Shown here in pieces: positions 33,501 to 58,886 of a stretch of DNA of 64,000 bases. A program made the translations under genes and the position numbers. How positions within the stretch are numbered: position 1 is the first letter of the stretch; each line of letters opens with the position of its first letter. Below the pieces are notes generated by a model. The model was not told where the DNA came from and did no database searches. It saw nothing but the letters and a program-made list of their open reading frames with translations. Where the stretch lies: positions 1 through 64,000 of the IMG/VR virus record IMGVR_UViG_3300030107_006644; one strand, 5' to 3'.

Positions 33501-36500
33501 ATGCTTTCGTGTTCGAACGAGACTAGAAACTGGAACAACTGGTGTCTATATTTCCACTATGACGACGAACGCAATACTGGCGATGTTGAATCAAATTATG
33601 ATCAATGGGTGACAATTCCCGGCCGCCGGGGCCTTGGCGGGTCTCAAGGGACGTTCGACAACTTGCTCAACGGAATGCAGCCATTTGCTTTTTCTACATG
33701 GCTTAAACCCCTTGGCTCTAAATACAACTACACAGTTCCCGGCTCCAGCCCGGCGGTTAACGTACCGCACAGCAACAAGAAAAGGGTGATCTTAAACTTA
33801 GGCGACGCTTCTCAAACCGCAATCGCGCGAACCGCAACTCAGGGCGACCGTACTGATTTTGTCGGTGCCACGCTTGCAACTCAGGACGCTGAACGTATAT
33901 TCAACTTTCAAATTCACCTTGAGCCTGCCGATAACAAGGTTGCGATTATTGCTCCGTTTAGTATGGGGTATGGCCACTGGACTGTTACAGGAACCTCTAC
34001 AGATCACAGAATTAAAGATAACGAGTGGACACACTTGGTGGTTGTGTACGTACCAGATTCTTCATTAGCTGATGTTGCGCTCGATCCTACCGAAGCCAAA
34101 CTTGACACTTATACGGGTACGACATCAGGGGTCACTGATAGAACACAACAGCCAGAAGACACACTTCAGATTGGCGACGATCCGATATCGTGGGGAGCAA
34201 GCTCTATCGATAAGAGCAGTGATACACCTACGGCGCATACTAACTTGATGGCCGGAACATCTGGACAAGGATCGGTAGATGCACAAGAAGAACAAGAGAT
34301 ACGTTCAATGGGCTGGAAGGGTGACACTAAGCTGTCGACCTTCTACAAAGGAATGGCGGCTATCGACGTCGCCGTAGACAAGATGCAAAAAGTTGAAAGT
34401 CGAGCACTTGAAGGGGCCACTCCGCTTATCAAAGTATACATGAACGGCGTTTTGGTAGCCAGCTTGGATCTGGCCACCGGCGTCAATACTGGATTTTTCT
34501 TAAACAGGATGCCTTATGGTACATCGATTCCGACAGTGGGATCGGCATTTTTAGGACGAGGCCCGACCGCAATCCGTGACCTTACGCCATGGCCCGAGGA
34601 CCACCCAGATTATGTTCAACTTGGTGTCCAAGGCCAAGCGGCCCCGACAGAATGGAGCTATTACGGCCTTATGGATGAAACATCTTTTTGGGTTAAAGGG
34701 AGAGCAACAGATGCATCTATTGAACCCCTTATGCAGCAAGATGTAACTCAGATTTATCAAAATGCAGACGGCAGTAGGGGCCCCAATAACCTAAATGCTT
34801 TCCGTCCGAAAAGTAGGGGCGCCCTCATATCGTGGTACCGCTTCCACGATCAGGAGCCGCCACACGTTTCTCGTTTCGATAGGATTACCGGTTATGGCCA
34901 ACTCAATCATTTGCCCAACCAAATTAATGATAATAAAGATTGGGGACTCTCTCGCTTTCACGCCTATACCTCCCCAACTTATCCTAATGCCGCCGTTCAC
35001 CGGCCAATTCGTGGAGGGTTTTCCGCTTCTACGGATCTCCCGGGAGAACAATACATCAATGAGTACTGCACACCAGTCACGTCCGCATATTACGACAATT
35101 GGTATGTAACACATGAAATACCCAGATCTACTGCACAGTATACTTGGATTTCACAATCTTGCGAGAGAGATGCATCAGGCTCCGCATTAGACGAGCTAGG
35201 AAACGCCGTTTGGCATCATCCTCCGCCGCATGGTAAGGTGCATGTGCACGACCCAACTTCAGAAGATTACCTAAAGCAATATAATGCCATATCTTTCACC
35301 ATAGAGAGTCATGTTGGATCGGCTTATTCTACCGCGACTGGCAAACGCCACTGGAACGATAGCGCAGGAAATGGCTCGCACACCCGCGAATCCGTGGCCG
35401 CCGTAGCTGCCTTGCGAGATTTTATTCCACAATCGTTCGCTCAACTCAACACAAACCTCTACGAATCGTTGAATGTTTCGACACAAGCGTTAGGTCTAAA
35501 CCAAGATGAATCTGATTTTATAAATGATGATGTCGTCAACTTTGGTGCTAATGATAGTGGCGGTTCGGCCGTTCTAAACGGGTTGGTGTTGAAGCGTCAA
35601 GGTCCGTATGGCTGGCCGTCTTGGAAACAAATTAGAGGTTCGGAACACCCAGTGGTCCGAAGACACCTTAAAAATAGCAGCGTGCTATCGATAGTGCAGC
35701 CACCAGAAGAAAAATATTTATATTCTGGTTCCGCCGTCATTGGTTCGTATTTTGGCCTTCCACGCGGCGATAACTTTGTTCAATATACGGAACCGGCAAT
35801 TGCATACAAAAAGCCAATGGTGCACGTCCTTCAAGACTCTATTGTGCTTATGCATGCTTATTCTAACGCTATCGATAAATTTTCAAATCAAAATATAAAC
35901 AATTTTCTAAATCTTAGAACCGATGAGCCATGCGCATATACAAACTTAGTCGAGGAATATACAGGCGAAGATCCAACTCTTAAGTTTAATTACTTGAGAT
36001 ATCACGAGCCGGTGTATCCAAAGCAAGTCAACCGATATAGAAATATTATTAGAAGTAGACCAAACTACGCAACCAGTTTCTATCAGTCAGGTCGTTCCAA
36101 CCGTAAGCCAATATTATGGGCACCAGAAGATCCCATGGGCCAACTTGACTGGAAGATACGGAATACAGAAACGCCTGTTTTGGTAGACACGATTATTAAT
36201 GTTACCAATTCTCAAGGGTATACAATGATTCACGCTGCTAAATGGGCTACCAATATAGGGGGAGCCGCAGCTACTGTTGGTCATATGGCTGGGTATATCA
36301 CGGGAAGCATCGGAGCCCACAGTATTTGGCCAATGGACGCGAGAGGAGACTTTCACACCATCACCAACGTGCTGGGTGAATCTTCCGTGCCTGATTTAGC
36401 TGTTCGAGAAGCCGGATATCCAATTAGGGAATATGTTGGATGCACCTCTGCCAACACCACCCCGGGGAACTACCCGCTTTGGTCTGGCTCTTGTGATTCT

Positions 36501-39500
36501 GATGCCTTTACTAAGAGCCACTATATAAGCGAACTATGCGGCGAGCTTCAGGCATACTTTGTGCAGGCTAGAGGCGCATCGACCACATATTATAATTGCG
36601 TAGATGGAGCTACACCGCCCGGCACCGATACAAATGGTGAACCGACCTTCGAGCCGCTAATTCCGCATGCACAATATCACCGTAGACACACAACAAGACT
36701 ATCTTCGTCCTTTCACTCGCTTTCGGGGTACAAGCATGGCATTTCCTCCAATCAGTGGAACTCGGGTTCGCACCCAAGAGGAATCTGGACGCGCGACTCA
36801 ATTGCTGACGCATCCGAATGGCAAACTAGATACGGGCTTGTTGCTGGCTCCTATATGAGCGGAGCCCTTCCATGGCACTTTGTTGATCGTATTGATTCAG
36901 GAATACGGGGACAGTGGCTCTACGGAGGCCAAACCATGTGGGAGGCCGATATACAATCCGGCAAACGACCCGCTTACGATAGTTATGAACAGTTTGCATA
37001 TGAGGATATTAGACTAAAAGGTCAGGAATATTCTACAGTACCAGAGTTTAAAATTAGTGATCATATCGCAAAGTATGTTAGTTTAAGAAATTCTGACTTC
37101 CTATCAGACAACGACACACTGTTTTCGCTTTCCGGCTCAAGTATTCGGGATAGCAGCGAAGACGGGTTTTATACCACCTATAGTCATAGTGATTTTATGA
37201 AGCATTTTGAGGTTATAGCTGGAGATCACGCTGATGTCACTGAAGGCCCATCTGAGTTAAAACTTCGTTGCACTGGAATAAAGAAATTTTTACCATATGA
37301 CGGAGTTTACCCAATGCAGAGAAGCTTGCAGTTGGCAACGCTGTTCTCTAGATCTTATGCAGACAATGTTTATCTCGTAGAGGGCTCGGGCTCTTCACAA
37401 ATTGATTTCGGTGCAGGCTACAGATCGAGCATACATGGTGGTGCCGGCACCGCTGCAGACTACTATGATGAGGATGCAATCAAGCAGGGAGCTTGGTCGG
37501 TATACATGAGGCCTTTCTTCGCCCCCGGTATTTTGTATAACACAGTGAAATCAGGAGTAGCAGTAGACTTTCCAGTTATGACTGGTTCGTTTCATATGAC
37601 TTCTTCTACGCCGTTAGCAATTAGTGGAAAACACGATGGAAGTTCCGGCTCGCCCTCTCACAATTGGGATAGTTACGATATTGACGAGAAAGAAATTTTT
37701 ACAGTCACAACGGATATCATAGCTGAGCCAAGATTTCATGATAGAATACCTTTTGAGGCGATTATCGAGCCCGACAAGCACGTTGTCGGTATGCCAATTG
37801 TTAATATGGAAACTCACGTCTCGGGCGCCGGAAACGTCTATGGACAAGTGAATGGTTGTGCGGAAAACATGGGATCGTATAATCGCACGCTGTCCATTAC
37901 TGCCTCGCTGGCCGCCCCCGGTGGCAATCTTTATAAAATGGCATCAAATAACTTTTTTGCAGAAAGTATCGACTTTTTCCTTCAAGATCGGCGTCTTTCA
38001 GCAATATCCTCTTTGCCTGAAAGCGATCCAAACTTTGGTGTAGTGTCTGAGGCTGATGCTGAGAAAAAGTTTATGGCCTTGGTTAAGATTCGCAAAAGCG
38101 TCGAACGCCAACAGAATTTCAACCCTCTTACTGGTGCTCTCGTCTCTACTGCAGATGGCAAGACATACCCTTATATAAATATGCCTTTGATGACGGATAC
38201 TCCAATCCCGCATCCGTGGACATTATCTAAGGAGACCATCACGATGTATAGCCGTCCTAGCGCTTTCGGCCCGCCGTCCATGGGAATGTGGAGTTCTATT
38301 AGTGGGTACAACATGCCTTATACTCCGCCATATTACGACGGTGCAGCTTGGGCAATTTTAACCTTTAGTCCGGGCGAATACTCCGGCGCTAAAAAATATA
38401 CACTGGACGAGATTCTGGCCGCCACCACAATTGAATATACTAGAACTGGAAAAGTTTATGTAGAGCATGGACCTGATGCATCCGGTAAGGCATTTGGAGC
38501 AACCACTGTTAGCAACTGGCCTTGGTCGCTTCCATGTTCGTATCCGCATGCCCGCGCAACCTTCTCTCTAAGTCACATAACTAACCTACTTGATACCAAT
38601 AGCTCTGGACGGTTTAAGGACTTTGTGGAGATGGTTGATCCTTATCCGCAAGGAAGGACTTTTATAGACGATAATGCAATGCAGATTAGCGCCTCTGTTA
38701 ATCTAATGCAAAAATCTCGCCTTAAAGCGGCAGAGTATAATGCGCTTACAGGAAGAAAGGTTCTGGTGACAGATTCGCCAAACGCAGAACTAGCTACATG
38801 GGTTATCCAAACAAAGTACGAGACTCCAATATTAAACTTTGGAGATGCGGACAAGACCGAAACAAAAACTGTAGCAGGCGATGCGACTAATCTTTGGGGT
38901 AATGAACTTTCCGCCAAGGGCATGTGGCATCAGTACGGAGTTTTACCATCAAGCGATGAGGACGGTATCTTCTTAGAAATTCAAGATGTTCCGAAAAAGT
39001 ATCTTAGAAAAGGAATGGGAATTGAGCCGAACGAGGTAAAATCTTTATGTGATTTGGTAGGATTCTCTACCGAGCCTGTAAAGATTGGTCAGCCGGCCGT
39101 AAGTAGGACCATCTCTGAAGCAGTGGTGGCCGTACCGTTCGTTGAAAAGGATGGAGAAAGGCAGTTCTTTAATGTTCCGCGAAGAACTATCGACTTGGCA
39201 GCTGGTTTGGATGATGTGACGGATGAGGATAGAGAATCCAATACGGTACCGGGAGACAGCATAGTCGACATGGTTGATAAGATGAACAAGTTTGTATTTC
39301 CTCCGACTATGAATTTCTTACTATATGACTCCATTGAGCCCTTCGCGATGTATATTTTTGAATTTACGCACGAGCTTTCCCAAATGGATCTTACCGACAT
39401 GTGGCAAAATCTCATGCCAGAAATTGGTCGTACCTTTGAAGAGCAAACTGTAGAGGTATCACATCCGTTGTTCTCTAACGAGGTTATGGGGTGTGAAGCG

Positions 39501-39830
39501 CTACTGAGCGGCCAAAAGGTTCAAAAAGAACTTCAATGGATGGTCTTCAAGGTCAAACAAAAGGCAAAGACAAACTATTACGAAAAGGTAATTGGTTCTG
39601 ATCTTGAAAAATATGACTTCCTGCAGATAAAACCGGGAGTGTTGAGTAAGCGCAACAATTCTTCATCTGGCTATAGTTATAACTGGCCGTATGACTATTT
39701 CTCACTAGTCGAGTTGGTCAAGATAGATTCGGAAGTTACGTTTGGGGCGATTCCGGAACCAGACGCGGTAAAGGAAAGTATAAAGGTGCGGGATTTAGCA
39801 GAATTGGTAAAATTAGAAGAGGATGAATAG
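27552..39830 (+). CDS. Giant (4092 aa) baseplate wedge/gp7-like protein with multiple LamG/concanavalin-A-like domains
   Basis: IFKSKGTEKAFRNLIRCFG (K.KGT wedge motif); LamG hallmarks TVEFWLK, WSHYAV, LYVNG, SGSLDEFRYW and again FSTWLKP, WTHLVVVY, VYMNG, GLMDETSFW; internal duplicated module. Confidence 0.7.
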   Translation: MSVKKLFDKAKKTRPVVKKPNKRLHVDVESEDFMEAKAATQERYDPHVIYGTTPIEMKNFVRYGSAKRYFEDAFSRIYTTYPYDGSLKEKEEWSQTSTPLDRYIFDNVYPRTNGYIRISSAGWGALGANGITVGYGHPSTLEYVTFYGGPTTGSATNLMKHFDLQDRGVGSNIYESYSELSSSTGGEVGLGTRESNLKFDVEDFGVTVEFWLKKTAFTTAKTEKEVIFDLWNGETPATDGYGRLRIEIDGTATGSPFLVSCQSGSSAGFSNEVVGTGLTTTTLQDWSHYAVSLKADTSTNKIRTRLYVNGVLNQEQSLGTAMGEVTGSLIANIGALRGATTSATVGTVAEGYGKLSGSLDEFRYWKAERGIKEVGRHWFKQYAGGTNTDLSNTTLGVYYKFNEGCTGTASVDQTVLDYSGRLTNGHWVGYPGCTARCVDSAMVLAGAAEREFKDPILYSFHSDVATKKETISKNAKAYDDNNSSSIYSTIPNWILEFQENNTANDLEYLTQIMASEFDKLHQQISALSRVRDSSYLSSTQTSIPFTDKMLTERGMPAADIFENADLLAKIMGRSESQEYESDIVDIKNRIYHSIYNNLSNIFKSKGTEKAFRNLIRCFGVDEKLLKLNIYGDNATYKLTDNAKIVAKKRRYANFYSSGSDDATVVQQTASSNANSVSYITGSNNSLYEPYSGMTVEAEVHFPKKKSASDEGYFAVTYHTASLFGMHTVGDDPADFTFLTDDYANLQVYALRDASDNKSARFMLTSSSPFPIPEIITDLYKDVYEDQTWNLSVRLRPSKYPISDMVHGAEAVAATATITTVAEASINDTKDFTLTDAAGTTTTYNFSTGLATTDNNVAYTPGGQDGRGPAGTITIGVLGTTTAADIRDEIITRINAGTSIGFAASASGDNVLVTQNTAGTAGNTSITEPAGATGLTLPSTFTGGLGAAHPFKVEFHGLRLIAGEVIDEFLLTSSATHASGSLFLQSSKRLYMGAHLTNYTGSVIQRSDTRSSGLRYWPIYLGPGEDPSVLSRTKDEFKNRVKDIDNYGTSYVYRNAGFLQDSLKDIEVPFVETLALNWNFSELSSSNAAGEFTVEDESSGSSDLLNRYKWVSNLVERQHTGRGYKFAASSTDVIDIMYVNSYAPQLPETISSSDMVNILTQDDDIFTREHRPVNYYFAIEKSMYQTISEEILNMFASIVDFNNLIGDPVNRYRQEYKDLGKLRQLFFERIGNTPELDKYVEFYKWIDSGINEMLEALIPASVNSSDGARTMVESHVLERNKYWNKFPTIEMVGDPPAVGLRGITEMLYPWKFGHANPGDVDSTVATIENERCFWWRERAERTTPANTSGDSTIDTQREGIRDVVGKHRDESRTLSHNAGTTYAGQTYALNRFSRPYRFDVDEVKEIHGGVNYRKGKDLDFSRTATHHHGEDNPVGFPVNVILYEDSNASVLEKQSKDPWFDMAGNTEGRQATCTDQEDEWPRSKNKVSYHAFILKNQEYSPPPWPPSMPKEDDGNTYFSSLKGDWASPFSLYETTEEVAATGYHKDINDRFRAKTTITNLHEDSYGDNERPVQGPFTDAHVGGRQNRHIILNKGEDTYVDRPEAWKLLMGPDLASCGHPFISPTDAYKLGLVGPDYPHPLPYSPGVKPSTWRPRANYLRDGTAKRPVNIQNIKHDTGSSILGNYDKDYQVVSIPGRQINNRALIKSGGFEPIIEDSFYFAETLSEYRKPERLRSEHVFVTRFSAPGAPEAAGDHRGGFGLDYNSGEFSSYSSMNYRNLILRGGGRWPDGIRELLTNHTRQFGYFSDQMNLSNGAAAAAVAATATITTVVEASINDTKDFTLTDAAGTTTTYNFSTGLATTDNNVAYIPGGSDGRGPSGTITIGLLGTTTAADVRDEIITRINAGTSIGFTASASGDNVLVTQNTVGPAGNTSITEPAGATGLTLPSAFTGGWGMSRASSVNAFDYSGQPNYHKTNRNTGYRLNNMLSCSNETRNWNNWCLYFHYDDERNTGDVESNYDQWVTIPGRRGLGGSQGTFDNLLNGMQPFAFSTWLKPLGSKYNYTVPGSSPAVNVPHSNKKRVILNLGDASQTAIARTATQGDRTDFVGATLATQDAERIFNFQIHLEPADNKVAIIAPFSMGYGHWTVTGTSTDHRIKDNEWTHLVVVYVPDSSLADVALDPTEAKLDTYTGTTSGVTDRTQQPEDTLQIGDDPISWGASSIDKSSDTPTAHTNLMAGTSGQGSVDAQEEQEIRSMGWKGDTKLSTFYKGMAAIDVAVDKMQKVESRALEGATPLIKVYMNGVLVASLDLATGVNTGFFLNRMPYGTSIPTVGSAFLGRGPTAIRDLTPWPEDHPDYVQLGVQGQAAPTEWSYYGLMDETSFWVKGRATDASIEPLMQQDVTQIYQNADGSRGPNNLNAFRPKSRGALISWYRFHDQEPPHVSRFDRITGYGQLNHLPNQINDNKDWGLSRFHAYTSPTYPNAAVHRPIRGGFSASTDLPGEQYINEYCTPVTSAYYDNWYVTHEIPRSTAQYTWISQSCERDASGSALDELGNAVWHHPPPHGKVHVHDPTSEDYLKQYNAISFTIESHVGSAYSTATGKRHWNDSAGNGSHTRESVAAVAALRDFIPQSFAQLNTNLYESLNVSTQALGLNQDESDFINDDVVNFGANDSGGSAVLNGLVLKRQGPYGWPSWKQIRGSEHPVVRRHLKNSSVLSIVQPPEEKYLYSGSAVIGSYFGLPRGDNFVQYTEPAIAYKKPMVHVLQDSIVLMHAYSNAIDKFSNQNINNFLNLRTDEPCAYTNLVEEYTGEDPTLKFNYLRYHEPVYPKQVNRYRNIIRSRPNYATSFYQSGRSNRKPILWAPEDPMGQLDWKIRNTETPVLVDTIINVTNSQGYTMIHAAKWATNIGGAAATVGHMAGYITGSIGAHSIWPMDARGDFHTITNVLGESSVPDLAVREAGYPIREYVGCTSANTTPGNYPLWSGSCDSDAFTKSHYISELCGELQAYFVQARGASTTYYNCVDGATPPGTDTNGEPTFEPLIPHAQYHRRHTTRLSSSFHSLSGYKHGISSNQWNSGSHPRGIWTRDSIADASEWQTRYGLVAGSYMSGALPWHFVDRIDSGIRGQWLYGGQTMWEADIQSGKRPAYDSYEQFAYEDIRLKGQEYSTVPEFKISDHIAKYVSLRNSDFLSDNDTLFSLSGSSIRDSSEDGFYTTYSHSDFMKHFEVIAGDHADVTEGPSELKLRCTGIKKFLPYDGVYPMQRSLQLATLFSRSYADNVYLVEGSGSSQIDFGAGYRSSIHGGAGTAADYYDEDAIKQGAWSVYMRPFFAPGILYNTVKSGVAVDFPVMTGSFHMTSSTPLAISGKHDGSSGSPSHNWDSYDIDEKEIFTVTTDIIAEPRFHDRIPFEAIIEPDKHVVGMPIVNMETHVSGAGNVYGQVNGCAENMGSYNRTLSITASLAAPGGNLYKMASNNFFAESIDFFLQDRRLSAISSLPESDPNFGVVSEADAEKKFMALVKIRKSVERQQNFNPLTGALVSTADGKTYPYINMPLMTDTPIPHPWTLSKETITMYSRPSAFGPPSMGMWSSISGYNMPYTPPYYDGAAWAILTFSPGEYSGAKKYTLDEILAATTIEYTRTGKVYVEHGPDASGKAFGATTVSNWPWSLPCSYPHARATFSLSHITNLLDTNSSGRFKDFVEMVDPYPQGRTFIDDNAMQISASVNLMQKSRLKAAEYNALTGRKVLVTDSPNAELATWVIQTKYETPILNFGDADKTETKTVAGDATNLWGNELSAKGMWHQYGVLPSSDEDGIFLEIQDVPKKYLRKGMGIEPNEVKSLCDLVGFSTEPVKIGQPAVSRTISEAVVAVPFVEKDGERQFFNVPRRTIDLAAGLDDVTDEDRESNTVPGDSIVDMVDKMNKFVFPPTMNFLLYDSIEPFAMYIFEFTHELSQMDLTDMWQNLMPEIGRTFEEQTVEVSHPLFSNEVMGCEALLSGQKVQKELQWMVFKVKQKAKTNYYEKVIGSDLEKYDFLQIKPGVLSKRNNSSSGYSYNWPYDYFSLVELVKIDSEVTFGAIPEPDAVKESIKVRDLAELVKLEEDE
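29979..30379 (+). repeat. Direct repeat copy 1 (~400 bp, 134-aa module AVAATATITT...FTGG)
   Basis: Aligns without gaps to 33000-33400 (offset 3021 nt, in frame); about 10 amino-acid differences, most nucleotide changes synonymous. Confidence 0.95.
33000..33400 (+). repeat. Direct repeat copy 2 of the 134-aa module
   Basis: See copy 1 at 29979-30379. Confidence 0.95.
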
Positions 39831-51209: not shown

Positions 51210-52142
51210 ATGATGAAAAAATTAAAAATTATTGAGCAGGTTTTAGGACAGTCAAGAAAGGTGAATGACGAGCAATTGTTCTTTTGCCCATACTGCTCTC
51301 ATCCTAAAAGAAAGCTCTCGGTAAACGTAGAGAAGAATGTTTTCAAATGTTGGGTTTGCGATTCGCATGGCCGAGACATTAGAAGGATGATTCGCAAATT
51401 TGGCACAATCAGCCAGCGAGAGGCTTGGGACGAGCTTACAAACCGCGTAGATATAACGGACTTTTCCAGCATTTTCGATGAGAAGCTTGAGGAACCCGAA
51501 GCCGTGACTGGGTTGCCGCAAGAGTTTAGATCCTTAGCAAACAAATCCACTCCGATTAGTGCGCTTCATGCAATACGGTATTTGCGGGAAAGAGATATCA
51601 CAAAAGAAGATATAGTTTTTTGGAAGATCGGTTATTGTAATAGTGGTGAGTATGGAGAGCGTATCGTAATACCCAGTTTTAATAACTCTGGCTATGTAAA
51701 CTATTTTGTAGCCAGAAGTTATACAAAGTATCAGGCAAGATACAAGAATCCGCCAGTATCAAGGGATATCTGTTTTAATGAGCTTTATATCGACTGGGAT
51801 AAAGACTTGGTTATCACGGAAGGGATCTTTGATGCGATTAAAGCTGGCCCAAACTCCGTACCGCTTTTAGGCTCAACACTTAGAGAAAATTCAAAGTTGT
51901 TCCAAAAAATTGTTACTCGCGATACTCCCGTATATATGGCTCTAGACGCAGACGCCAGCAAGAAAGAGAGTAGGATTATTAACCTTTTTCTTAAATACGA
52001 TATTGAAGTTTATAAGATAGACACATCAGGGGTCGACGATGTTGGTTCCATGACTCGCGAGCAGTTCCAGAGGAGAAAAGAAAAAGCAACCTTTATCCCT
52101 TCAGGCGACTATTTATTGAAGACGGCGTTATATAATTTATAA
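51210..52142 (+). CDS. DNA primase (zinc finger + TOPRIM)
   Basis: CPYC..H..LSVN..FKCWVC zinc finger, YL.ER, RIVIP, YKNP, ITEGIFD, LDAD, DVG. Confidence 0.9.
   Translation: MMKKLKIIEQVLGQSRKVNDEQLFFCPYCSHPKRKLSVNVEKNVFKCWVCDSHGRDIRRMIRKFGTISQREAWDELTNRVDITDFSSIFDEKLEEPEAVTGLPQEFRSLANKSTPISALHAIRYLRERDITKEDIVFWKIGYCNSGEYGERIVIPSFNNSGYVNYFVARSYTKYQARYKNPPVSRDICFNELYIDWDKDLVITEGIFDAIKAGPNSVPLLGSTLRENSKLFQKIVTRDTPVYMALDADASKKESRIINLFLKYDIEVYKIDTSGVDDVGSMTREQFQRRKEKATFIPSGDYLLKTALYNL
52109..52116 (+). promoter_or_regulatory. Candidate late-promoter motif CTATTTAT
   Basis: Near the primase 3' end, upstream of the leader-tagged gene cassette; identical octamer at 23483 and 59415. Confidence 0.35.
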
Positions 52143-52162: not shown

Positions 52163-54220
52163 ATGTCAAGGTGGGGCAAACCAACCAAAAACAAAAGAAG
52201 AACTGATCCCCGATATCACTTAGAAGAAACTGTCGAAAAAGATGACAAGCGGGAGATTTTGCAAGAGCAACCCTCCGGCCTGCGAACTATGGGCAATGTA
52301 GACTCTTCTCAGTTTGTCGGTCCAACTCCGGGCGATCTGATTGATTTCGCCCAGCCACTTGCCGGCCCAGCCAATATGCAAACCGGAGAAGGCATGGCGT
52401 CTCAATACTTATACAATCCGATTTATGATATTGTGAGCAGTACGCCATTCGCCGGGCGCCAACACGCCCTCCAACGCCAAGCAGCCGCAGCGGCCGCCTT
52501 AGATCCTACAAACGTGCCCCCTATGCCAAGAAACGTGAGGACACATCCACCTCCAGCCCAAGCCCCTAACCGCTGGTATTCATCCAACAAGCTGCTCAAC
52601 CCCCGCTCAACGGGCCAAGCCATTGGCAGCCGTCTTCTGAGATGGGGAGGTCCAGCTGTTGGATACCTGCCTCAAGGCGTGATGTTGGCCGGCCAGTATC
52701 AAGGGATGGGAGCCGCAGAGGATGAAATGCATCGACTCGGCCTGCAGAGTAGTTTTATACAACACGGCGGCTATCAGCGACAAATTGATGCGAACCGTGA
52801 CGCACTCGCCGGCATGCCAACTGATACCGAAGAACAGAGGCAAGCGAGGGCAAGACAGGCCGGAATCGTCCAACAACAGCAGAATGCGCTCGACGCAAGA
52901 AATGCAGCAATTGAAGATCTGGCGTGGACCGGTGCATCTGTCGGCGCCACCGGCTACGGTATCGGCGTAGGTCAAGGCCCGCTTGCTAGGGGTGGCCAAA
53001 CAATTGCCAATCGAGGCTATTCTACAGCACTCGGCCGCGTATTTTCGGGAGGAGGAAATCCAGCCTTCAGAACCGGCGCCCAGCGCGCTCTGCCATGGCT
53101 CGGCCGCGCTGCTACCCGTGTAGCACTCCCGCTTGCTGCTGCCCAAGGCTTTGTAGATCTTGGACGAGCCGGCTACGAAGCCGGCGCCGCTTATGGAGCA
53201 CCTTGGGGAGACAGCAGCGAAGCCATCGGCTGGACAAATCCGGGGCAAATGGCCCAAGAAACAATTCTCCACAGCACCCTCGGCGGTGAGGATATATTAG
53301 ATAGAGATCCACGAGACGATAATGAAGCCCTTGCTAGAATTCGAGCCGCAGAAACAGAAGCCGGCCTTAGCACCGGCGACCACATTCGAAATTGGCGTCA
53401 ACACCAGTCAGAATATGAGCGCGATCACGGCGCCATGCCTGAGTACGAATTTGTGCCCGATCCGGAGACGCAAAGGCTTGTTCCTACTGCCGATTCCCGC
53501 AGAGCCCGCCACGATGCGCAGAGAAATGTCTATGCCAGACAGCACGGCTTTAATGATTGGGAGCAGGCAGCTGAAAGCGACACGGCGATGGGTAGACAAA
53601 TTAGGAGAACACGCGCAAGAGCTTCTCAGATGCGAGGCGAGGATCATGATTCTGGAGCACTCACGGGTGATATTGGATTTGATCGCGCCGGCGAACTCGG
53701 CTCACTAAACTTAGATGAGGGCAAAAGTAGAAAGGAGCAAAGATTGCTAATGGAAAATCAATATTCTAAAATGCAAAGATTAGCGGGGATCAAAAAGAAA
53801 AAGCCTCGCCTTAATGAGGATTTGCTAGGCCTTGTCTTATTCGCAGCTGCAAACGCTGCAGCTATCTATGCTGCGGTTGGCCGCCACAATTTGGCCATGG
53901 GCGAACTCGGTGCCGGTGAACCCCCATTGGCAAAAAAATGGGAAGAAACAAAGAGAGAAGCAGAGCAGAGTAATGCTCCTCTGCACGATATGCTTAAGGG
54001 AATCGAAGATATGGCAGAAAGTCAATCCGGACAGCTAACTCCACAACAGTATCAGCAGTTAGCTCAAGCTTTCGGAAATGATCCGGTTCTTATCGACATG
54101 CTAGATCAGTTTGATCGCGAGCAACTATATCCCGATGAAGCTAAACAATTGATTGATCAGATGGATCGTTACGTGCGATCTAAAATACAAGAATTACCCG
54201 ATGAGGGAGAAGAGGTTTAA
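52163..54220 (+). CDS. Hypothetical Gly/Ala/Gln-rich protein, candidate internal virion (ejected) protein
   Basis: GGAGG RBS; RRTDPRYHLEE and ILQE near N-terminus; internal KMQRLAGI and RLNE; hydrophobic Gly/Ala stretches. Confidence 0.6.
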   Translation: MSRWGKPTKNKRRTDPRYHLEETVEKDDKREILQEQPSGLRTMGNVDSSQFVGPTPGDLIDFAQPLAGPANMQTGEGMASQYLYNPIYDIVSSTPFAGRQHALQRQAAAAAALDPTNVPPMPRNVRTHPPPAQAPNRWYSSNKLLNPRSTGQAIGSRLLRWGGPAVGYLPQGVMLAGQYQGMGAAEDEMHRLGLQSSFIQHGGYQRQIDANRDALAGMPTDTEEQRQARARQAGIVQQQQNALDARNAAIEDLAWTGASVGATGYGIGVGQGPLARGGQTIANRGYSTALGRVFSGGGNPAFRTGAQRALPWLGRAATRVALPLAAAQGFVDLGRAGYEAGAAYGAPWGDSSEAIGWTNPGQMAQETILHSTLGGEDILDRDPRDDNEALARIRAAETEAGLSTGDHIRNWRQHQSEYERDHGAMPEYEFVPDPETQRLVPTADSRRARHDAQRNVYARQHGFNDWEQAAESDTAMGRQIRRTRARASQMRGEDHDSGALTGDIGFDRAGELGSLNLDEGKSRKEQRLLMENQYSKMQRLAGIKKKKPRLNEDLLGLVLFAAANAAAIYAAVGRHNLAMGELGAGEPPLAKKWEETKREAEQSNAPLHDMLKGIEDMAESQSGQLTPQQYQQLAQAFGNDPVLIDMLDQFDREQLYPDEAKQLIDQMDRYVRSKIQELPDEGEEV

Positions 54221-54221
54221 T

Positions 54222-55265
54222 ATGAGTGATTTTGATTTTATAGACCATTATGCGGAAGAAGAAGAAGCGGTAAATGAAAATATGCTGCCTGAAAACAGCG
54301 TTGTTTCTTCTTTGAATTGCGCAGTAATTGGTGTGGGAGGTGGAGGCGGAAAAATGGCCAAAGCCTTCCTTGAATTAGGGTTTAACAAGACCTTATTGGT
54401 GAATACTACATCCAAGGACATTCCTGAAGGAGTTGACGAACAACATGTTGTGTTGATTCCTGAAGCAGATGGTATTGGAAAGGATGTCGATCTTGGAAAA
54501 GCCGTATTTGAGGCAAATAGTGCCGTTGTCGAAGACGCCCTTAGAACGAAGCTGGGCCGCGTTGACTGGTTGTTTGTATGTGCAGGCGGAGGAGGAGGTA
54601 CAGGAAGCGCTGTGGCGTCCTTAAACGATGTTTTTGACCGCTATTTAAGCTCGGTACAAGCTGAAGGCCGCGTAATCTATGTGGTTTCTTGGCCAACGGC
54701 TCAAGAATGTCTCAACCCGACAATTAGCAAGAACGCATTATCTTTGGTGAATGATGTTTCGGAGCTTCCGCACGTTGTTTTGGATAATGAGAGGCAAGTT
54801 AAACTTCTGAGAGGAAAGGTTGGCATGCTAGGTATGTATCCTTTGGCCAATTCGTCTTTTGCAAAATTGTTAAGTCAAGTATTAAAGCTTTCATCCGAAC
54901 AATCTCCAATCCAATCGTTTGATTCAAAGGATCTGGAAAGGTGTCTCCGAACTGAAAAGAGAATGTTCGTGGGTTCGACCATGATTCAGAATCCAGCAAC
55001 ACCTAACTTGGGCTCGATGATTCTTCAGAATTGCCTGAAGCGTTCCCCGTGCCCTGCGCCACAAGGAAAACCATCGACTGGCTCGCTATTACTAGTTGTA
55101 AATTCGCAGATGGCAGGCGATCCTGAGATCAGCGCGCACCTAGACGCAGCAATTTCTTACGTCGGAGGAAGAACAGATACACTTTTTTCTGGAGTTTATA
55201 TAAATGAAAGTGTCCCCGGGCTAGTTGCGATACTACTTATGAATGGGTTGGAGAGTGGTCAATAA
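54222..55265 (+). CDS. Tubulin/FtsZ-family GTPase (PhuZ/TubZ/CetZ-like)
   Basis: VIGVGGGGGK (T1), VNT..D, GIGKD..G, AGGGGGTGS tubulin signature, LDNE, SFDSKDL (T7-like). Start moved from 54153 to ATG 54222 (GAGG RBS). Confidence 0.9.
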   Translation: MSDFDFIDHYAEEEEAVNENMLPENSVVSSLNCAVIGVGGGGGKMAKAFLELGFNKTLLVNTTSKDIPEGVDEQHVVLIPEADGIGKDVDLGKAVFEANSAVVEDALRTKLGRVDWLFVCAGGGGGTGSAVASLNDVFDRYLSSVQAEGRVIYVVSWPTAQECLNPTISKNALSLVNDVSELPHVVLDNERQVKLLRGKVGMLGMYPLANSSFAKLLSQVLKLSSEQSPIQSFDSKDLERCLRTEKRMFVGSTMIQNPATPNLGSMILQNCLKRSPCPAPQGKPSTGSLLLVVNSQMAGDPEISAHLDAAISYVGGRTDTLFSGVYINESVPGLVAILLMNGLESGQ

Positions 55266-55266
55266 A

Positions 55267-55623
55267 ATGAAAGAGAAAACGCTTGAACAAATAATCAGAG
55301 AAGAGCTTGGTAAATTCACAGAAGCAATCAGGTTTGGCTCTAGAGGAGAAGCTGAGGCTTATGGAGGCGACCAAACTGTCGTCCATGAGCCGGGAGACGA
55401 CGAGGGTGGATCCGCTGATCCGTCCGCTGGTCTAAGTGTTGATCGCAGTCCTGCAGAAGAGGCTGTCGAAGACAAGATCTATGATTTAGTTGATGCAATC
55501 AAGCAAATGGGTAAATCAAACCCAGACATGACAGACACCTATATTTACTTATTTAGAGCCCTGCAGCAAGCGGGAGTTAACGTTAGCAGTGTTGCAGTGT
55601 TAGCAGAAGGGAGAAGAAAATGA
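55267..55623 (+). CDS. Leader-tagged small protein (MKEKTLEQIIREEL)
   Basis: Shared N-terminal motif with downstream genes; start moved from 55243 to 55267. Confidence 0.7.
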   Translation: MKEKTLEQIIREELGKFTEAIRFGSRGEAEAYGGDQTVVHEPGDDEGGSADPSAGLSVDRSPAEEAVEDKIYDLVDAIKQMGKSNPDMTDTYIYLFRALQQAGVNVSSVAVLAEGRRK

Positions 55624-55724
55624 AGAAAGTATTACACAAATTAGCAAACCTATTTAATAGTGACCATTGTTGTTGCTGCTGCGGTTGTTGTAGTTGCGAC
55701 AACTGTTCGGGAGCATGTAAATGA
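55620..55724 (+). CDS. 34-aa Cys-rich micropeptide (metallothionein-like), not in ORF track
   Basis: MKKVLHKLANLFNSDHCCCCCGCCSCDNCSGACK*; ATGA overlaps at both ends fill the gap exactly; purine-rich RBS upstream. Confidence 0.75.
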   Translation: MKKVLHKLANLFNSDHCCCCCGCCSCDNCSGACK

Positions 55725-57235
55725 AATTAACCAGAAAACAACTTGAACAACAGGTTAGAGAGGCTCTTAAAAAGAGAACTCTTAATGAGAACGAACCACC
55801 CGCTGGGGAAGAGTCCGGTGCAGGATCCAGCCTCTTCGGTGATGGCAATACCTTCTTGGGCATGGAGCCCGATGAAGTGGCCACTGACATGGGCACCCCG
55901 GATGCCACCTTTAATGTTCAGGGCCTAGGGCAAGAACAGGGAGAATTCTTCACCGGCGCCACAGAGCCCAATCCCGCCGGCGGAGGATCATCGGGATTCG
56001 TCCGGACCTTCGATGATCGCGACCTAGCCGCGCAAGCACCAGCCGGTAATCTTAATCAACGCGCAAGAGCAGCCAGACGGTCTGGCGAATTGGTCAGTTA
56101 TGACGAACTGCCGATCAGCACTTCCGCGTATCGAACAGATCCGGAAACTGGCGATATTCGCGTTACGCGCGGGAAGTTCAGGGGCGCCCGTGTTGATCCT
56201 GCCACGATGCCGGGTAATGTGGCCCCGACTGTGCGAGTGACACCACAGGCGCAGGCCAGAAGAGATGCGGCTCGCCGCATTGCCCACGGTAGTTATCAGA
56301 CGCAACAAGGTTCTGGCCGCATTAATGAGGATAATGAGGATGACTACATGTCGCAAAAGACCTTTCCGGCGTTCTCGGCCCTCCCGGGAGAACAAAAACT
56401 CCCCGGCGAGAGCATTGTGGATCCACAAACAGGCGCCACATGGAGCACCGGGAATATCGGAGGAATCGAGCAGTGGATCGGCGGTGAAGGAAACACGGAC
56501 GAGGAAAAGGCTCAGTGGGAAAGGGAGAGGACATCAGATGCATCAGACGAGGCACTCTATCCGACCTCGCCCGCAAAAGTAGAAGATTCGAAACCAAGAC
56601 GCACCAGCCTCGCAGACAAGATTATGAACCCAGATCCCTTGGGCCACTTGCAAGAACGAAGAGAGGCCATGCAACGCAGACGAAGCCGCGTATCTCTTCC
56701 TCCTAAAACTCCCGCTATGCAGGCTATATACGAGAGGGCTGCAATGGGAGATCATCGCCTTAGATTCATGTTTGAGCATGCAGTCGCCGGAAACGCAAAG
56801 GCGCAGCAGTTTCTTAACGCTTTGGCTGAAACTCTTACCAAGAGTCAAATTCTAAAGGAGCAAGAAGCAGCACCTGAACCACCTCACGATTCCGGCCCTC
56901 CAAAAACCGACGAAGGTCTCAATATTGACGCGCTGGTTGAAGAATTGGAGTCGGTGGATGAGGGCATTGGCGCGTGGGCAATGAATAAAGCCGGCCTGAT
57001 TAGCGACGAGGATTACGCAAATCTTACCGCCGAATGGGGCAGACAACGCGCCGCCAAGCGAACGTTAGGAACCAGCGGGTCTGATATAAAGCTGGGCACT
57101 GGCAGAAAAAGCCAGATGGATCAAATCGACTGGAACCCGAAGCGAAAAGACGAGCTTAACGAATCCCAAGATCCCCTTAAGAGAATGCGAGATCTTGCAT
57201 TAAAATCATACGGGAGCTACAAGTATGAAGATTGA
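55721..57235 (+). CDS. Leader-tagged low-complexity protein (504 aa)
   Basis: MKLTRKQLEQQVREAL..LNE N-terminus; internal RINE, ILKE, LNE sites; C-terminal RMRDLAL. Confidence 0.7.
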   Translation: MKLTRKQLEQQVREALKKRTLNENEPPAGEESGAGSSLFGDGNTFLGMEPDEVATDMGTPDATFNVQGLGQEQGEFFTGATEPNPAGGGSSGFVRTFDDRDLAAQAPAGNLNQRARAARRSGELVSYDELPISTSAYRTDPETGDIRVTRGKFRGARVDPATMPGNVAPTVRVTPQAQARRDAARRIAHGSYQTQQGSGRINEDNEDDYMSQKTFPAFSALPGEQKLPGESIVDPQTGATWSTGNIGGIEQWIGGEGNTDEEKAQWERERTSDASDEALYPTSPAKVEDSKPRRTSLADKIMNPDPLGHLQERREAMQRRRSRVSLPPKTPAMQAIYERAAMGDHRLRFMFEHAVAGNAKAQQFLNALAETLTKSQILKEQEAAPEPPHDSGPPKTDEGLNIDALVEELESVDEGIGAWAMNKAGLISDEDYANLTAEWGRQRAAKRTLGTSGSDIKLGTGRKSQMDQIDWNPKRKDELNESQDPLKRMRDLALKSYGSYKYED

Positions 57236-57485
57236 TAGGAAGACATTGATGCGGATCCTTAGAGAAGAGCTATCTACCCACTATTCGCAAGATCTTAAAG
57301 AAGAGACGGATGCGAGCGGCATGTCAAAGAAAATGCACGATGCCTTAGAAGATGCTTCTGGTACAGCAAACATGGACACCGACATGGATACATCAGGCCT
57401 TCAATCAGACGGCGTTAGTTTGGATGAAGGACTCACAAGATTAATTCAATTAGCTGGCATAAGGAGCGCAAAAGATGAAGGTTAG
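57225..57485 (+). CDS. Leader-tagged small protein
   Basis: MKIDRKTLMRILREEL..LKEE; C-terminal LDE..RLIQLAGI; GGAG RBS. Confidence 0.7.
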   Translation: MKIDRKTLMRILREELSTHYSQDLKEETDASGMSKKMHDALEDASGTANMDTDMDTSGLQSDGVSLDEGLTRLIQLAGIRSAKDEG

Positions 57486-57879
57486 CAAAAAGCAATTTAA
57501 AGGTTTAGTTGCCGAAGCGTTAAAGACCGTTTTGGAGATTGAAGAGCCGCCATTTAGAACGGGGCTGAGCAAGGCCGACTGGGAAGGCCCGGGCGATCCC
57601 CGTGGTGCCGGCGCAGATCTTGATGTTTTCCCGGAAACTGAAGCTGAGAAGCTGGGAGATCGGATCGCCGCAGCTATGGAAGCTGGAATTAGAAATGTTT
57701 TAATGAGCCACTTGGGCGACCAAGAAGGCTTAACAGTATACGATAAGTATTTAGCCGATGTCGATGATGATATTCTGAGTATTGCTATGCACATGCGCGA
57801 TGCCGCGATGGACATGGTAGGAGAACCAGAAGGAATCACTGGCGACGAAGAAGACGAAGATTTACAGGAGGAATGGTAA
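57475..57879 (+). CDS. Leader-tagged acidic small protein
   Basis: MKVSKKQFKGLVAEAL; AAGGAG RBS. Confidence 0.7.
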   Translation: MKVSKKQFKGLVAEALKTVLEIEEPPFRTGLSKADWEGPGDPRGAGADLDVFPETEAEKLGDRIAAAMEAGIRNVLMSHLGDQEGLTVYDKYLADVDDDILSIAMHMRDAAMDMVGEPEGITGDEEDEDLQEEW

Positions 57880-58247
57880 TGCAAATAACCATCAAAAGAC
57901 TAAAAGAGATCATTAAAGAAGAGGTGGATTATTTCAACCAACTTCTCACAGAGCAGGGTCCGCCCCCCGGCGGCGGTATGCCGCCCGGAGCACCCCCTGT
58001 TGGAGGCCCTCCCCCCGGGATGGGTCCACCCCCCGGAGGCCCGCCTCCCGGCATGGGAGCCGCACCCGGAGGTCCGCCTCCCGGTGGAATGCCCCCCGGA
58101 GGCCCACCCTCCGGACCACCCGGCGGAGATCCCATTCAGGGTGCTATCGCAGCCCTTGAGGGTGGTGACGCCGCTTCAGCCCTTCAGATCCTTAAGTCGT
58201 TAGCTGGCCCACCCGCCGGCGGCGGTATGCCACCCGGCATGGGATAA
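57879..58247 (+). CDS. Leader-tagged Pro/Gly/Met-rich protein
   Basis: MQITIKRLKEIIKEEV..LLTE then GPPPGGGMPPG repeats; AGGAGG RBS, TAATG overlap (track start 57873). Confidence 0.7.
   Translation: MQITIKRLKEIIKEEVDYFNQLLTEQGPPPGGGMPPGAPPVGGPPPGMGPPPGGPPPGMGAAPGGPPPGGMPPGGPPSGPPGGDPIQGAIAALEGGDAASALQILKSLAGPPAGGGMPPGMG
57957..58244 (+). repeat. Low-complexity GC-rich coding repeat (GPPPG/MPPG units)
   Basis: About ten imperfect (G/M)PP(P)G units with varied codons. Confidence 0.8.
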
Positions 58248-58256
58248 ACATAGAGC

Positions 58257-58886
58257 ATGAAGCTCTTATTTGAAAACTGGCGTAAATTCCTAAAAGAAGA
58301 AAAATGGGAAGATTTCGACACCAATAAGGGCGAGTGGACTAATCTTTCTGCTAGCGATATTGAAGCTGCTAAAGATCCGGCAAATGTAGATATTACAGAC
58401 GAATTGCTGGCCCTAATAGACAATGCTTATAAAGATATTGGTGGAAATTTCGACTTCAGAAACCCCGGCGATATCCCCGGAGATGCTGATTTTTGGCTAG
58501 CGGTTGATTTGGACGACGATCCAGAGCCCGATGCAGTCAGGGTGGGCAAAACTAAGCCTGCAGGGCTTAAATTATCTGCTTCTGGTCATGATGGCTCTAG
58601 ACCGGCAATTGAGGCATTCAAGCAAAAGACCTCAGAATTATTAAGTACGCCCGGGCACTATGGTGAGATGTCAAAAGCCGCCGCACATGTGATGATTAAA
58701 TATTTTCAAGTGCCATTTGTCGCAGATCCAGAAATCGTGCAGAAAGTGCTGGGGCCCTCTAAACCTATTAAGTGGCTCGGACCACATCCAGAGGGTAAAT
58801 ATCCCGGATATGATGGTTGGTATACGAGAACCATTTCAGGTCACGAAGATGAAATGAAAATTATGCTGGGTACCCCCAACGCATAA
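58257..58886 (+). CDS. Leader-tagged protein (MKLLFENWRKFLKEE) with globular body
   Basis: Second leader type shared with 60194; body has LIDNAYKDIGG, SGHDG, GWYTR. Confidence 0.75.
   Translation: MKLLFENWRKFLKEEKWEDFDTNKGEWTNLSASDIEAAKDPANVDITDELLALIDNAYKDIGGNFDFRNPGDIPGDADFWLAVDLDDDPEPDAVRVGKTKPAGLKLSASGHDGSRPAIEAFKQKTSELLSTPGHYGEMSKAAAHVMIKYFQVPFVADPEIVQKVLGPSKPIKWLGPHPEGKYPGYDGWYTRTISGHEDEMKIMLGTPNA

Follow-up and report, generated by a model that had tools for sequence, protein, structure and literature searches.

A virus genome of 205,517 bp (IMG/VR record IMGVR_UViG_3300030107_006644, 100% complete according to CheckV; its first 64,000 nucleotides (nt) are referred to below as the window) carries, at positions 55620-55724 of the window, an open reading frame (ORF) for a peptide of 34 amino acids (aa), ten of which are cysteine (Cys). 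Judged by comparison with its relatives, this ORF is a real conserved gene, under purifying selection and furnished with translation signals. It belongs to a family of phage microproteins that is widespread, was previously unannotated and appears from its members to be akin to known kinds of peptide by composition alone. As to function, the reading that we prefer, as possible rather than probable, is that of a small metal-thiolate, metallothionein-like cluster, joined to an N-terminal helix that would dock or oligomerise, possibly in the prohead or on DNA.

The polycysteine ORF and its family

The ORF and its immediate signals are the following.

55620..55724, plus strand: poly-Cys microprotein gene, 34 aa and stop codon, one of a family with at least 149 distinct peptides
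55609..55613, plus strand: Shine-Dalgarno-like GGGAG, 6 nt 5' of the peptide ATG
55620..55667, plus strand: residues 1-16, conserved and predicted to be an amphipathic N-terminal helix, MK..LH[KR]L.NLFN..H, with near-invariant H6 and H16 (alignment, AlphaFold2 (AF2))
55668..55721, plus strand: residues 17-34, Cys core CCCCCGCC.C..C.G.C(K), ten Cys (sequence, family scans)
55709..55713, plus strand: GGGAG within the last codons of the peptide, 7 nt 5' of the next ATG, putative ribosome-binding site of the downstream gene

The gene overlaps its neighbours at both ends. Its ATG (55620-55622) shares the tetranucleotide ATGA at 55620-55623 with the TGA of the upstream ORF (55621-55623), and its own TGA (55722-55724) shares the ATGA at 55721-55724 with the ATG (55721-55723) of a 504-aa ORF. 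The GGGAG at 55709-55713 is a probable ribosome-binding site of that downstream gene and, because the last codons of the peptide overlap it, the C-terminal Gly is not purely constrained by the protein. The Cys residues are encoded by six TGT and four TGC codons. An initial annotation, made from the letters of the window, had described a peptide of 34 aa with ten Cys, ATGA overlaps at both ends, mixed Cys codons and an amphipathic 16-aa N-terminal part preceding a Cys-packed core; the first three were confirmed on the sequence, and the last was borne out by the sequence and by the family alignment. The best ATG-initiated ORF of the window reaches ten Cys in a 20-aa stretch, compared with maxima of 4-7 in 100 dinucleotide shuffles, and Cys makes up 0.87% of codons across the long ORFs of the same genome. 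The peptide ranks among the most Cys-dense natural sequences. The depth of contigs from four marine metagenome runs (at least 80% likeness) peaks solely over the Cys-run segment, at window positions 55659-55712, reaching for example 2548 as against about 0-5 on the flanks; hence either many other genotypes share this segment or unrelated TGY-rich DNA was recruited to it.

The first homologue was found by way of loci linked to a tubulin gene, one of the neighbours in the window: one of 45 such loci (L023) carried a 36-aa version, placed differently. When viral contigs were scanned for codons that spell HCCCCCGCC, 87 stretches came up, and almost every one was this small ORF; the same scan of metagenome contigs returned at least about 88 family members among the matches listed. 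Viral and marine metagenome contigs together thus hold at least some 170 copies, corresponding to at least 149 distinct peptides. These are 30-51 aa long, mostly 31-34 aa, and follow the consensus MK..LH[KR]L.NLFN..HCCCCCGCC.C, after which three further Cys occur. Exactly ten Cys were counted in 139 of the 149 peptides, and exactly two His likewise in 139. The last three Cys are arranged as C.C..C.G.C or as C.C..GCC, the two being equally frequent, and a CC.CCC form is also visible; their number stays constant. The residues between the Cys are G, S, A, T, N, K, E or D. No aromatic residue occurs in the core (residues 17-34), while a conserved Phe12 lies in the N-terminal helix. Although the scan for the Cys pattern places no constraint on the N-terminus, this part is still 82-98% conserved at L5, H6, L8, N10, L11, F12 and N13. 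A reciprocal scan with the N-terminus and HCC found the exact HCCCCCGCC in 46 of 50 matches; in the other four, either a single residue differed (G replaced by Y, D or T) or the contig was truncated.

The net charge lies between +1 and +5 in most members, and 11 of the 149 variants end in an AT-hook-like tail, RRRGRPRKK. The R-G-R-P core with basic flanks in these 11 members is absent from the window copy, and the Pfam AT_hook model matched with an E-value of only 0.18. The tails and the basic net charge are hints of an association with nucleic acid. In seven loci (L073, L096, L180, L198, L201, L267 and L277) a conserved gene for 64 aa (MKLNTTENLSEGD...) begins, at a -4 overlap, where the variant with the basic, RGRP-containing tail ends. 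One contig holds a second, truncated copy (L079:612-805, minus strand; MKKILNKKHCCCCCGCCKW...) 140 nt from the intact gene, which looks like a decaying tandem duplicate.

Selection on the ORF was evident from its codons. TGT and TGC stand near 50:50 at every Cys, Leu is encoded by TTA, CTT, CTA and TTG, and Gly by all four of its codons. The mean pairwise proportion of synonymous differences (pS) is 0.81-0.93, compared with 0.16-0.24 for nonsynonymous differences (pN), and the same is true of the 15 N-terminal codons alone; because pS is saturated, these figures do not convert into a proper ratio of substitution rates (dN/dS). Four of the five other reading frames contain stops in 67-75 of 75 sequences, and the fifth is interrupted in 38 of 75. 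A Shine-Dalgarno-like motif lies 5-12 nt upstream of the gene in 70 of 72 distinct contexts, as against 21% at random ATGs of the same loci. That the ORF arose by chance, or is a low-complexity repeat read off-frame, would suit a sequence that is very short, missing from gene calls and rich in TGY triplets. This reading is refuted by the conservation data, namely the roughly 170 or more in-frame copies, the saturated synonymous sites, the ribosome-binding sites and the stops in most other frames, and we take its probability to be practically nil. The initial annotation had made its proposal depend on in-frame conservation in relatives, and this is what was found, along with strong purifying selection.

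The family is sparsely represented on record. Ten family peptides, looked up by exact sequence, had no entry among 15 billion collected proteins, and a family profile run against 1.84 billion representatives retrieved eight proteins, all of the family, some with mis-called starts and none informative. When 44 members were compared with Pfam, Metallothio_Pro included, at E-values up to 10, no family was matched besides noise. GenBank phages yielded neither a DNA match to the locus nor a tblastn match for the peptide; a match to the pattern CCCCxCC in Flavobacterium phage immuto was discarded, being off-frame within a tail-spike gene. Literature searches on phage polycysteine, the core motif, the tag motif of neighbouring genes (see below), Cys-rich small proteins of jumbo phages and phage metallothioneins returned nothing relevant. 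Gene callers have overlooked the family, although marine viral and metagenome sequences contain many and varied members of it.

A candidate metal-thiolate peptide

We infer the function of the helix, the binding of metal and any association with virion or DNA. Residues 1-16 would form an amphipathic helix that probably docks to a partner or drives self-association, and residues 16-34 would provide the thiolates of ten Cys together with His16 (His6 lying in the helix) as ligands. These ligands would most likely wrap a polynuclear metal-thiolate cluster of the Zn, Cd or Cu(I) type, in the manner of a single metallothionein domain, so that during infection the peptide could sequester or buffer metal or reducing equivalents, or transport them, perhaps in or near the prohead and DNA. 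The metal-thiolate reading is favoured because the Cys10His2 set is fixed while its spacing varies, and because the intervening residues are small and polar. Since the last three Cys shift in spacing at constant number, the constraint would be one of ligand count rather than of sequence recognition. From the alignment, the fixed ligand count is the demand of a coordination shell and not of a modifying enzyme or of the ribosome. If the peptide does bind metal, phage infection would be tied to the trace-metal or redox economy of the ocean.

Characterised metallothioneins offer a close comparison. The bacterial proteins SmtA and BmtA hold Zn4Cys9His2 clusters, cyanobacterial SmtA using Cys9His2 for four Zn; yeast Cup1 forms a Cu(I)-thiolate cluster, and the mammalian domains are M3Cys9 and M4Cys11. 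With 34 aa, ten Cys (29%) and the motifs CCCCC, CC, CxC and CxxC, the phage peptide has the composition of a metallothionein, and it resembles these proteins further in its very small, single-domain size, its small polar spacers and a fixed ligand count that includes His. It differs from them in the five-Cys run, in the Phe-bearing amphipathic N-terminal helix, in its confinement to phages and in the lack of sequence similarity. The initial annotation had called the peptide metallothionein-like: the Cys10His2 set, the composition and the variable spacing fit this description, whereas homology to known metallothionein families was not found.

Several points weigh against a metal-thiolate cluster. 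Five consecutive Cys are unusual among characterised metallothioneins. Part of the core conservation was fixed by construction, through the HCCCCCGCC search pattern. No significant match, to metallothionein families or to others, came from Pfam, NCBIfam or PHROGs, and sequences of the PDB gave none. The AF2 model of the 34-aa peptide, with a predicted local distance difference test (pLDDT) score of 64, contains a helix alone, at residues 2-12, the tail being undefined; such a model is what may be expected of a fold that requires metal, at low confidence. The gene is also accessory and dispensable: a close, complete relative (G001, 203 kb with terminal repeats), whose tubulin is 77% identical, does without it. 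Furthermore, the N-terminus of the peptide lacks Glu and an [LI]-x-E motif (position 13 is N or D), while the products of its neighbours, described below, carry I/L-x-E at positions 12-14.

The initial annotation had also considered the precursor of a modified peptide. On this reading the peptide would be the precursor of a ribosomally synthesised and post-translationally modified peptide (RiPP), with the N-terminus as leader and a Cys core that an enzyme of the host, or one of the phage that escaped recognition, converts to thiazoles, thioethers or the like, as in the streptolysin-S group of linear azol(in)e-containing peptides (LAP) or in SCIFF/ranthipeptides. The layout of leader and Cys core agrees with it, and a language model listed SCIFF, FibroRumin and other Cys-rich precursors as look-alikes, with scores of only 0.6-0.71 that serve as leads only. 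Streptolysin-S/LAP and SCIFF/ranthipeptide precursors are, like the phage peptide, short, with a conserved N-terminal part and a Cys-dense core that includes CCCCC. Unlike them, however, the phage peptide is not accompanied, either close by or elsewhere in the genome, by a radical SAM enzyme, a cyclodehydratase or a dehydrogenase. The absence of YcaO and radical SAM enzymes from the window, which the initial annotation had pointed out, holds and extends to the whole 205.5-kb genome: a scan for RiPP maturases found no YcaO (PF02624), LanC (PF05147) or radical SAM (PF04055) protein, while controls for YcaO and radical SAM were positive. Moreover, no enzyme family recurs beside the gene in 83 viral loci, no NCBIfam or Pfam precursor model was matched, and conservation is higher in the Cys skeleton than in the supposed leader, the reverse of most RiPP families. 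The proposal of a modified-peptide precursor is weakened by these results, and we consider it quite unlikely.

The helix could alternatively lie on the inner membrane with the Cys run lipidated, which would make the peptide a membrane-associated, S-acylated cysteine string. Its composition resembles the palmitoylated Cys strings of eukaryotes, and an amphipathic helix with net positive charge would be in keeping with such a role. Bacteria are not known to have an S-acyltransferase, and none came to light in this analysis; the peptide lacks a hydrophobic segment, and the AT-hook tails of some variants indicate DNA rather than lipid. This alternative seems very improbable.

The phages that carry the gene

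The window genome (G000) encodes a gp23-type major capsid protein (PF07068, E-value 6.2e-61) and a gp21-type prohead protease (PF03420, E-value 2.9e-31), as well as a T4-like baseplate wedge protein and a primase. Its capsid protein is closest to those of Flavobacterium phage vB_FspM_immuto, Microcystis phage Mel-JY01 and Rhodothermus phage RM378 (40-46% identity), and its primase to those of vB_FspM_immuto and Mel-JY01 (31-35% identity), RM378 being matched by the capsid protein only. Because both proteins are nearest to these phages, we regard the window genome as that of an uncultured marine myovirus of the 'Far-T4' type. The gene psbA was not found in the genome, so that the phage is probably not a cyanophage. 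The locus was found in public runs from marine or seawater metagenomes. The major capsid protein (L162:451-2361, about 87606-89516 of G000) is 636 aa long, and its Gp23 match is split by an insertion of ~200 residues, a split that recurs in 17 other carrier genomes. Two giant ORFs, at window positions 15087-23465 (2792 aa) and 27552-39830 (4092 aa), adjoin the baseplate wedge gene; the 2792-aa product had no PHROG match.

Among large searchable contigs that carry the peptide gene, 18 of 20 encode a gp23-type capsid protein with the same split match, and among carriers that are at least 90% complete all ten encode a gp23-type capsid protein. On account of this capsid protein the family appears specific to the T4-like lineage, and the carriers would be marine T4-like ('Far-T4') myoviruses of 150-290 kb. 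Each genome has one copy of the peptide gene, one contig having in addition the truncated copy mentioned above. The position of the gene is not constant: in G006 (tubulin 78% identical) it lies about 8 kb upstream of the tubulin gene, and in the relative that has no copy other small genes occupy the region after tubulin.

When 185,579 prokaryote species were searched, with one genome each, 20 pattern matches were obtained, only two of which were family members. Both stand on contigs that are probably mis-binned phage DNA. One (L150, PBIO01000025.1, binned as Halobacteriovorax, 101 kb) is identical in size to an IMG/VR viral contig that bears the gene. The other (L154, NHHP01000006.1, binned as Pelagibacter TMED166, 116 kb) appears to be of phage origin and has a copy with a basic insert (KGKKLGRKKLRKG) that still contains ten Cys. 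Since the family is thus confined to phage contigs, no cellular gene cluster offers itself as the source from which a RiPP precursor could have been captured.

Tagged neighbouring genes and a possible place in the virion

The neighbours of the peptide gene are all co-directional. The dominant ones encode products that are alike only in an N-terminal tag ending in [LI]-x-E, the motif after which gp21 of T4 cuts, and that continue with unrelated sequence. Three classes of tag were distinguished: class A, MKITKxQLxxIIKE; class B, MKxLLxEWRKFLxE; and class D, MPKFYRQNKKRIDPRYFLNE. Some tagged products are enzymes, among them an HD_4 hydrolase and a zeta-toxin-like P-loop protein. In the window, tagged genes start at 52163, 55267, 55721, 57225, 57475, 57879 and 58257, and the surroundings of the peptide gene are arranged as follows.

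51210..52142, plus strand: DNA primase; a homologue lies at most 1.5 kb upstream of the peptide gene in 28 of 162 contexts
52163..54220, plus strand: 685-aa gene after the primase, with a class-D tag variant (..DPRYHLEE)
54219..55265, plus strand: tubulin/FtsZ-like gene, a neighbour here and not a conserved neighbour
55267..55623, plus strand: upstream gene with class-A-like tag, MKEKTLEQIIREEL; ORF listed from 55243, probable start ATG 55267
55721..57235, plus strand: downstream 504-aa gene with class-A tag (MKLTRKQLEQQVRE), its start overlapping the peptide stop
57225..58886, plus strand: continuation of the tagged array, class A at 57225, 57475 and 57873/57879, class B at 58257, MKLLFENWRKFLKEE

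No relatives were found for the 504-aa downstream protein. Where enough downstream sequence was available (150 contexts), the peptide gene was followed by a class A gene in 56 and by a class B gene in 16; these 72 genes lie within about 25 nt, and a further dozen or so contexts show variant tags by eye. The junction to the tagged gene is often an overlap of -4 or -1. Tagged arrays run up to about 13 consecutive genes at many loci (e.g. L122, L112 and L064), and tagged genes also occur at 120360 and 121453 of the window genome. The most usual place of the peptide gene is after the primase, at the head of such an array.

In five of 162 contexts (L083, L134, L230, L242 and L250) the peptide gene lies between the prohead protease gene and a scaffold-like gene (MKKxELKKVLKP). 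Two of these were read directly (L083:3967-4065, minus strand; L134:1099-1197, plus strand), and in both the three genes abut stop-to-start. In the window genome the protease and scaffold-like genes overlap each other directly (L161:1384-2058 and 2055-2507). The hydrophobic positions 4, 5, 8, 11 and 12 of the peptide coincide with the register of the class B tag, and both begin with MK.

The internal head proteins of T4 are diverse and share only a capsid-targeting sequence (CTS), a propeptide of 10-20 residues that is removed by gp21 (PMC3012670, PMC5694885). By analogy, the tagged arrays and the gp21-type protease look like a large CTS-style cargo system of internal or ejected proteins. The likeness extends to the accessory, highly variable region of a T4-like phage and to neighbours that have in common only an N-terminal tag of 14-20 aa ending in [LI]-x-E (PMC3012670, PMC5694885). 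The peptide itself begins with MK and shows class B hydrophobic spacing; unlike T4 internal proteins, it has no Glu cleavage site, and it would be far smaller than any known one. Because its N-terminus has no Glu, packaging by the route of the tags is only possible. The initial annotation had suggested that the peptide might be packaged with the neighbouring cargo, a suggestion that has gained circumstantial support from the CTS-like tags, the gp21-type protease and the five protease/scaffold contexts. Whatever the role of the peptide, its setting exposes a large uncharacterised system of N-terminally tagged genes, candidate cargo, in Far-T4-like phages.

One form of the metal-thiolate reading would place the peptide in the virion or on DNA, loaded into the prohead together with CTS-tagged effector cargo and injected with the DNA. 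We hold this to be unlikely though not far-fetched. If true, it would be the first phage 'metallothionein', by which a marine phage brings a trace-metal or thiol payload, or strips that of its host, in a metal-poor ocean; packaging of the peptide would also extend the T4 internal-protein concept to a microprotein.

A related alternative dispenses with a defined metal cluster. The peptide would then be a virion-internal thiol/disulfide peptide whose helix is an uncleaved CTS and whose Cys tail cross-links reversibly through disulfides, or serves beside the packaged DNA as a sacrificial antioxidant in oxic, sunlit seawater, the peptide being reduced and released upon ejection. Small basic peptides that contain Cys are able to condense DNA and to form cross-links by way of disulfides or Zn, and 11 of the 149 family peptides, in pairing Cys with an RRRGRPRKK tail, resemble protamines and AT-hook peptides; the window copy and most members differ from these in having no tail and in being only mildly basic. 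Besides these tails and the basic net charge of the family, the alternative draws on the arrays of CTS-like tagged genes in which the gene sits, in a phage with a gp21-type protease, on the five contexts between protease and scaffold-like gene, and on the diversity of T4 internal proteins around a common CTS (PMC3012670, PMC5694885). However, the N-terminus has only its hydrophobic register in common with the tags and is without [LI]-x-E, the commonest position of the gene is after the primase and not in the head module, and the fixed ten Cys and two His are better accounted for by coordination chemistry. We therefore think this alternative unlikely.

The close coupling to downstream genes allows a further interpretation, in which the small ORF would act in cis: slowing at the Cys codons, or arrest by the nascent peptide, would tune the coupled downstream cargo genes to Cys-tRNA or to another signal. 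Polycysteine leader ORFs of mycobacteria mediate such Cys-responsive attenuation and are likewise short, with consecutive Cys codons, and are placed upstream of, and coupled to, other genes. The five plus two consecutive Cys codons of the phage gene agree with this, as does the tight spacing of stop and next start, overlapping or adjacent (-4 to +1 nt), in ~50 contexts with motif-classified downstream genes; the length of the peptide is near that of the ribosome exit tunnel. In contrast to the mycobacterial leaders, however, the whole phage peptide is conserved, its non-Cys N-terminal residues being under purifying selection, and the number of Cys is fixed, yet variation is greatest at the C-terminal end, which would lie closest to the peptidyl-transferase centre at termination and may be extended by a tail of 15 aa. 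The downstream genes are heterogeneous and none belongs to Cys metabolism, and the gene sometimes stands alone, 31 of 150 contexts having no gene within 80 nt downstream. Rfam gave no match, terminators were not in excess, promoter and terminator scans stayed at background, and the T4 late-promoter motif TATAAATA was not enriched. A regulatory function of this kind is distinctly improbable.

One of the tagged genes of the window, at 57873-58247, encodes a 124-aa product in which the class-A tag is followed by an extreme Pro/Gly/Met repeat (GGPPPGMGPPPGG...). The tubulin gene, which the initial annotation had taken as the landmark for synteny, is indeed tubulin/FtsZ-like, with a Pfam Tubulin match at an E-value of 1.8e-7 (32.1 bits, compared with a curated cut-off of 33). 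Its adjacency to the peptide gene is not conserved, and synteny between the two was rejected, as only one of 45 related tubulin loci has the peptide within 5 kb. GenBank phages gave no tblastn match for this tubulin. The gene is a member of the tubulin/FtsZ family in a T4-like, not phiKZ-like, phage, and relatives with 56-79% identity are present in 45 viral contigs.

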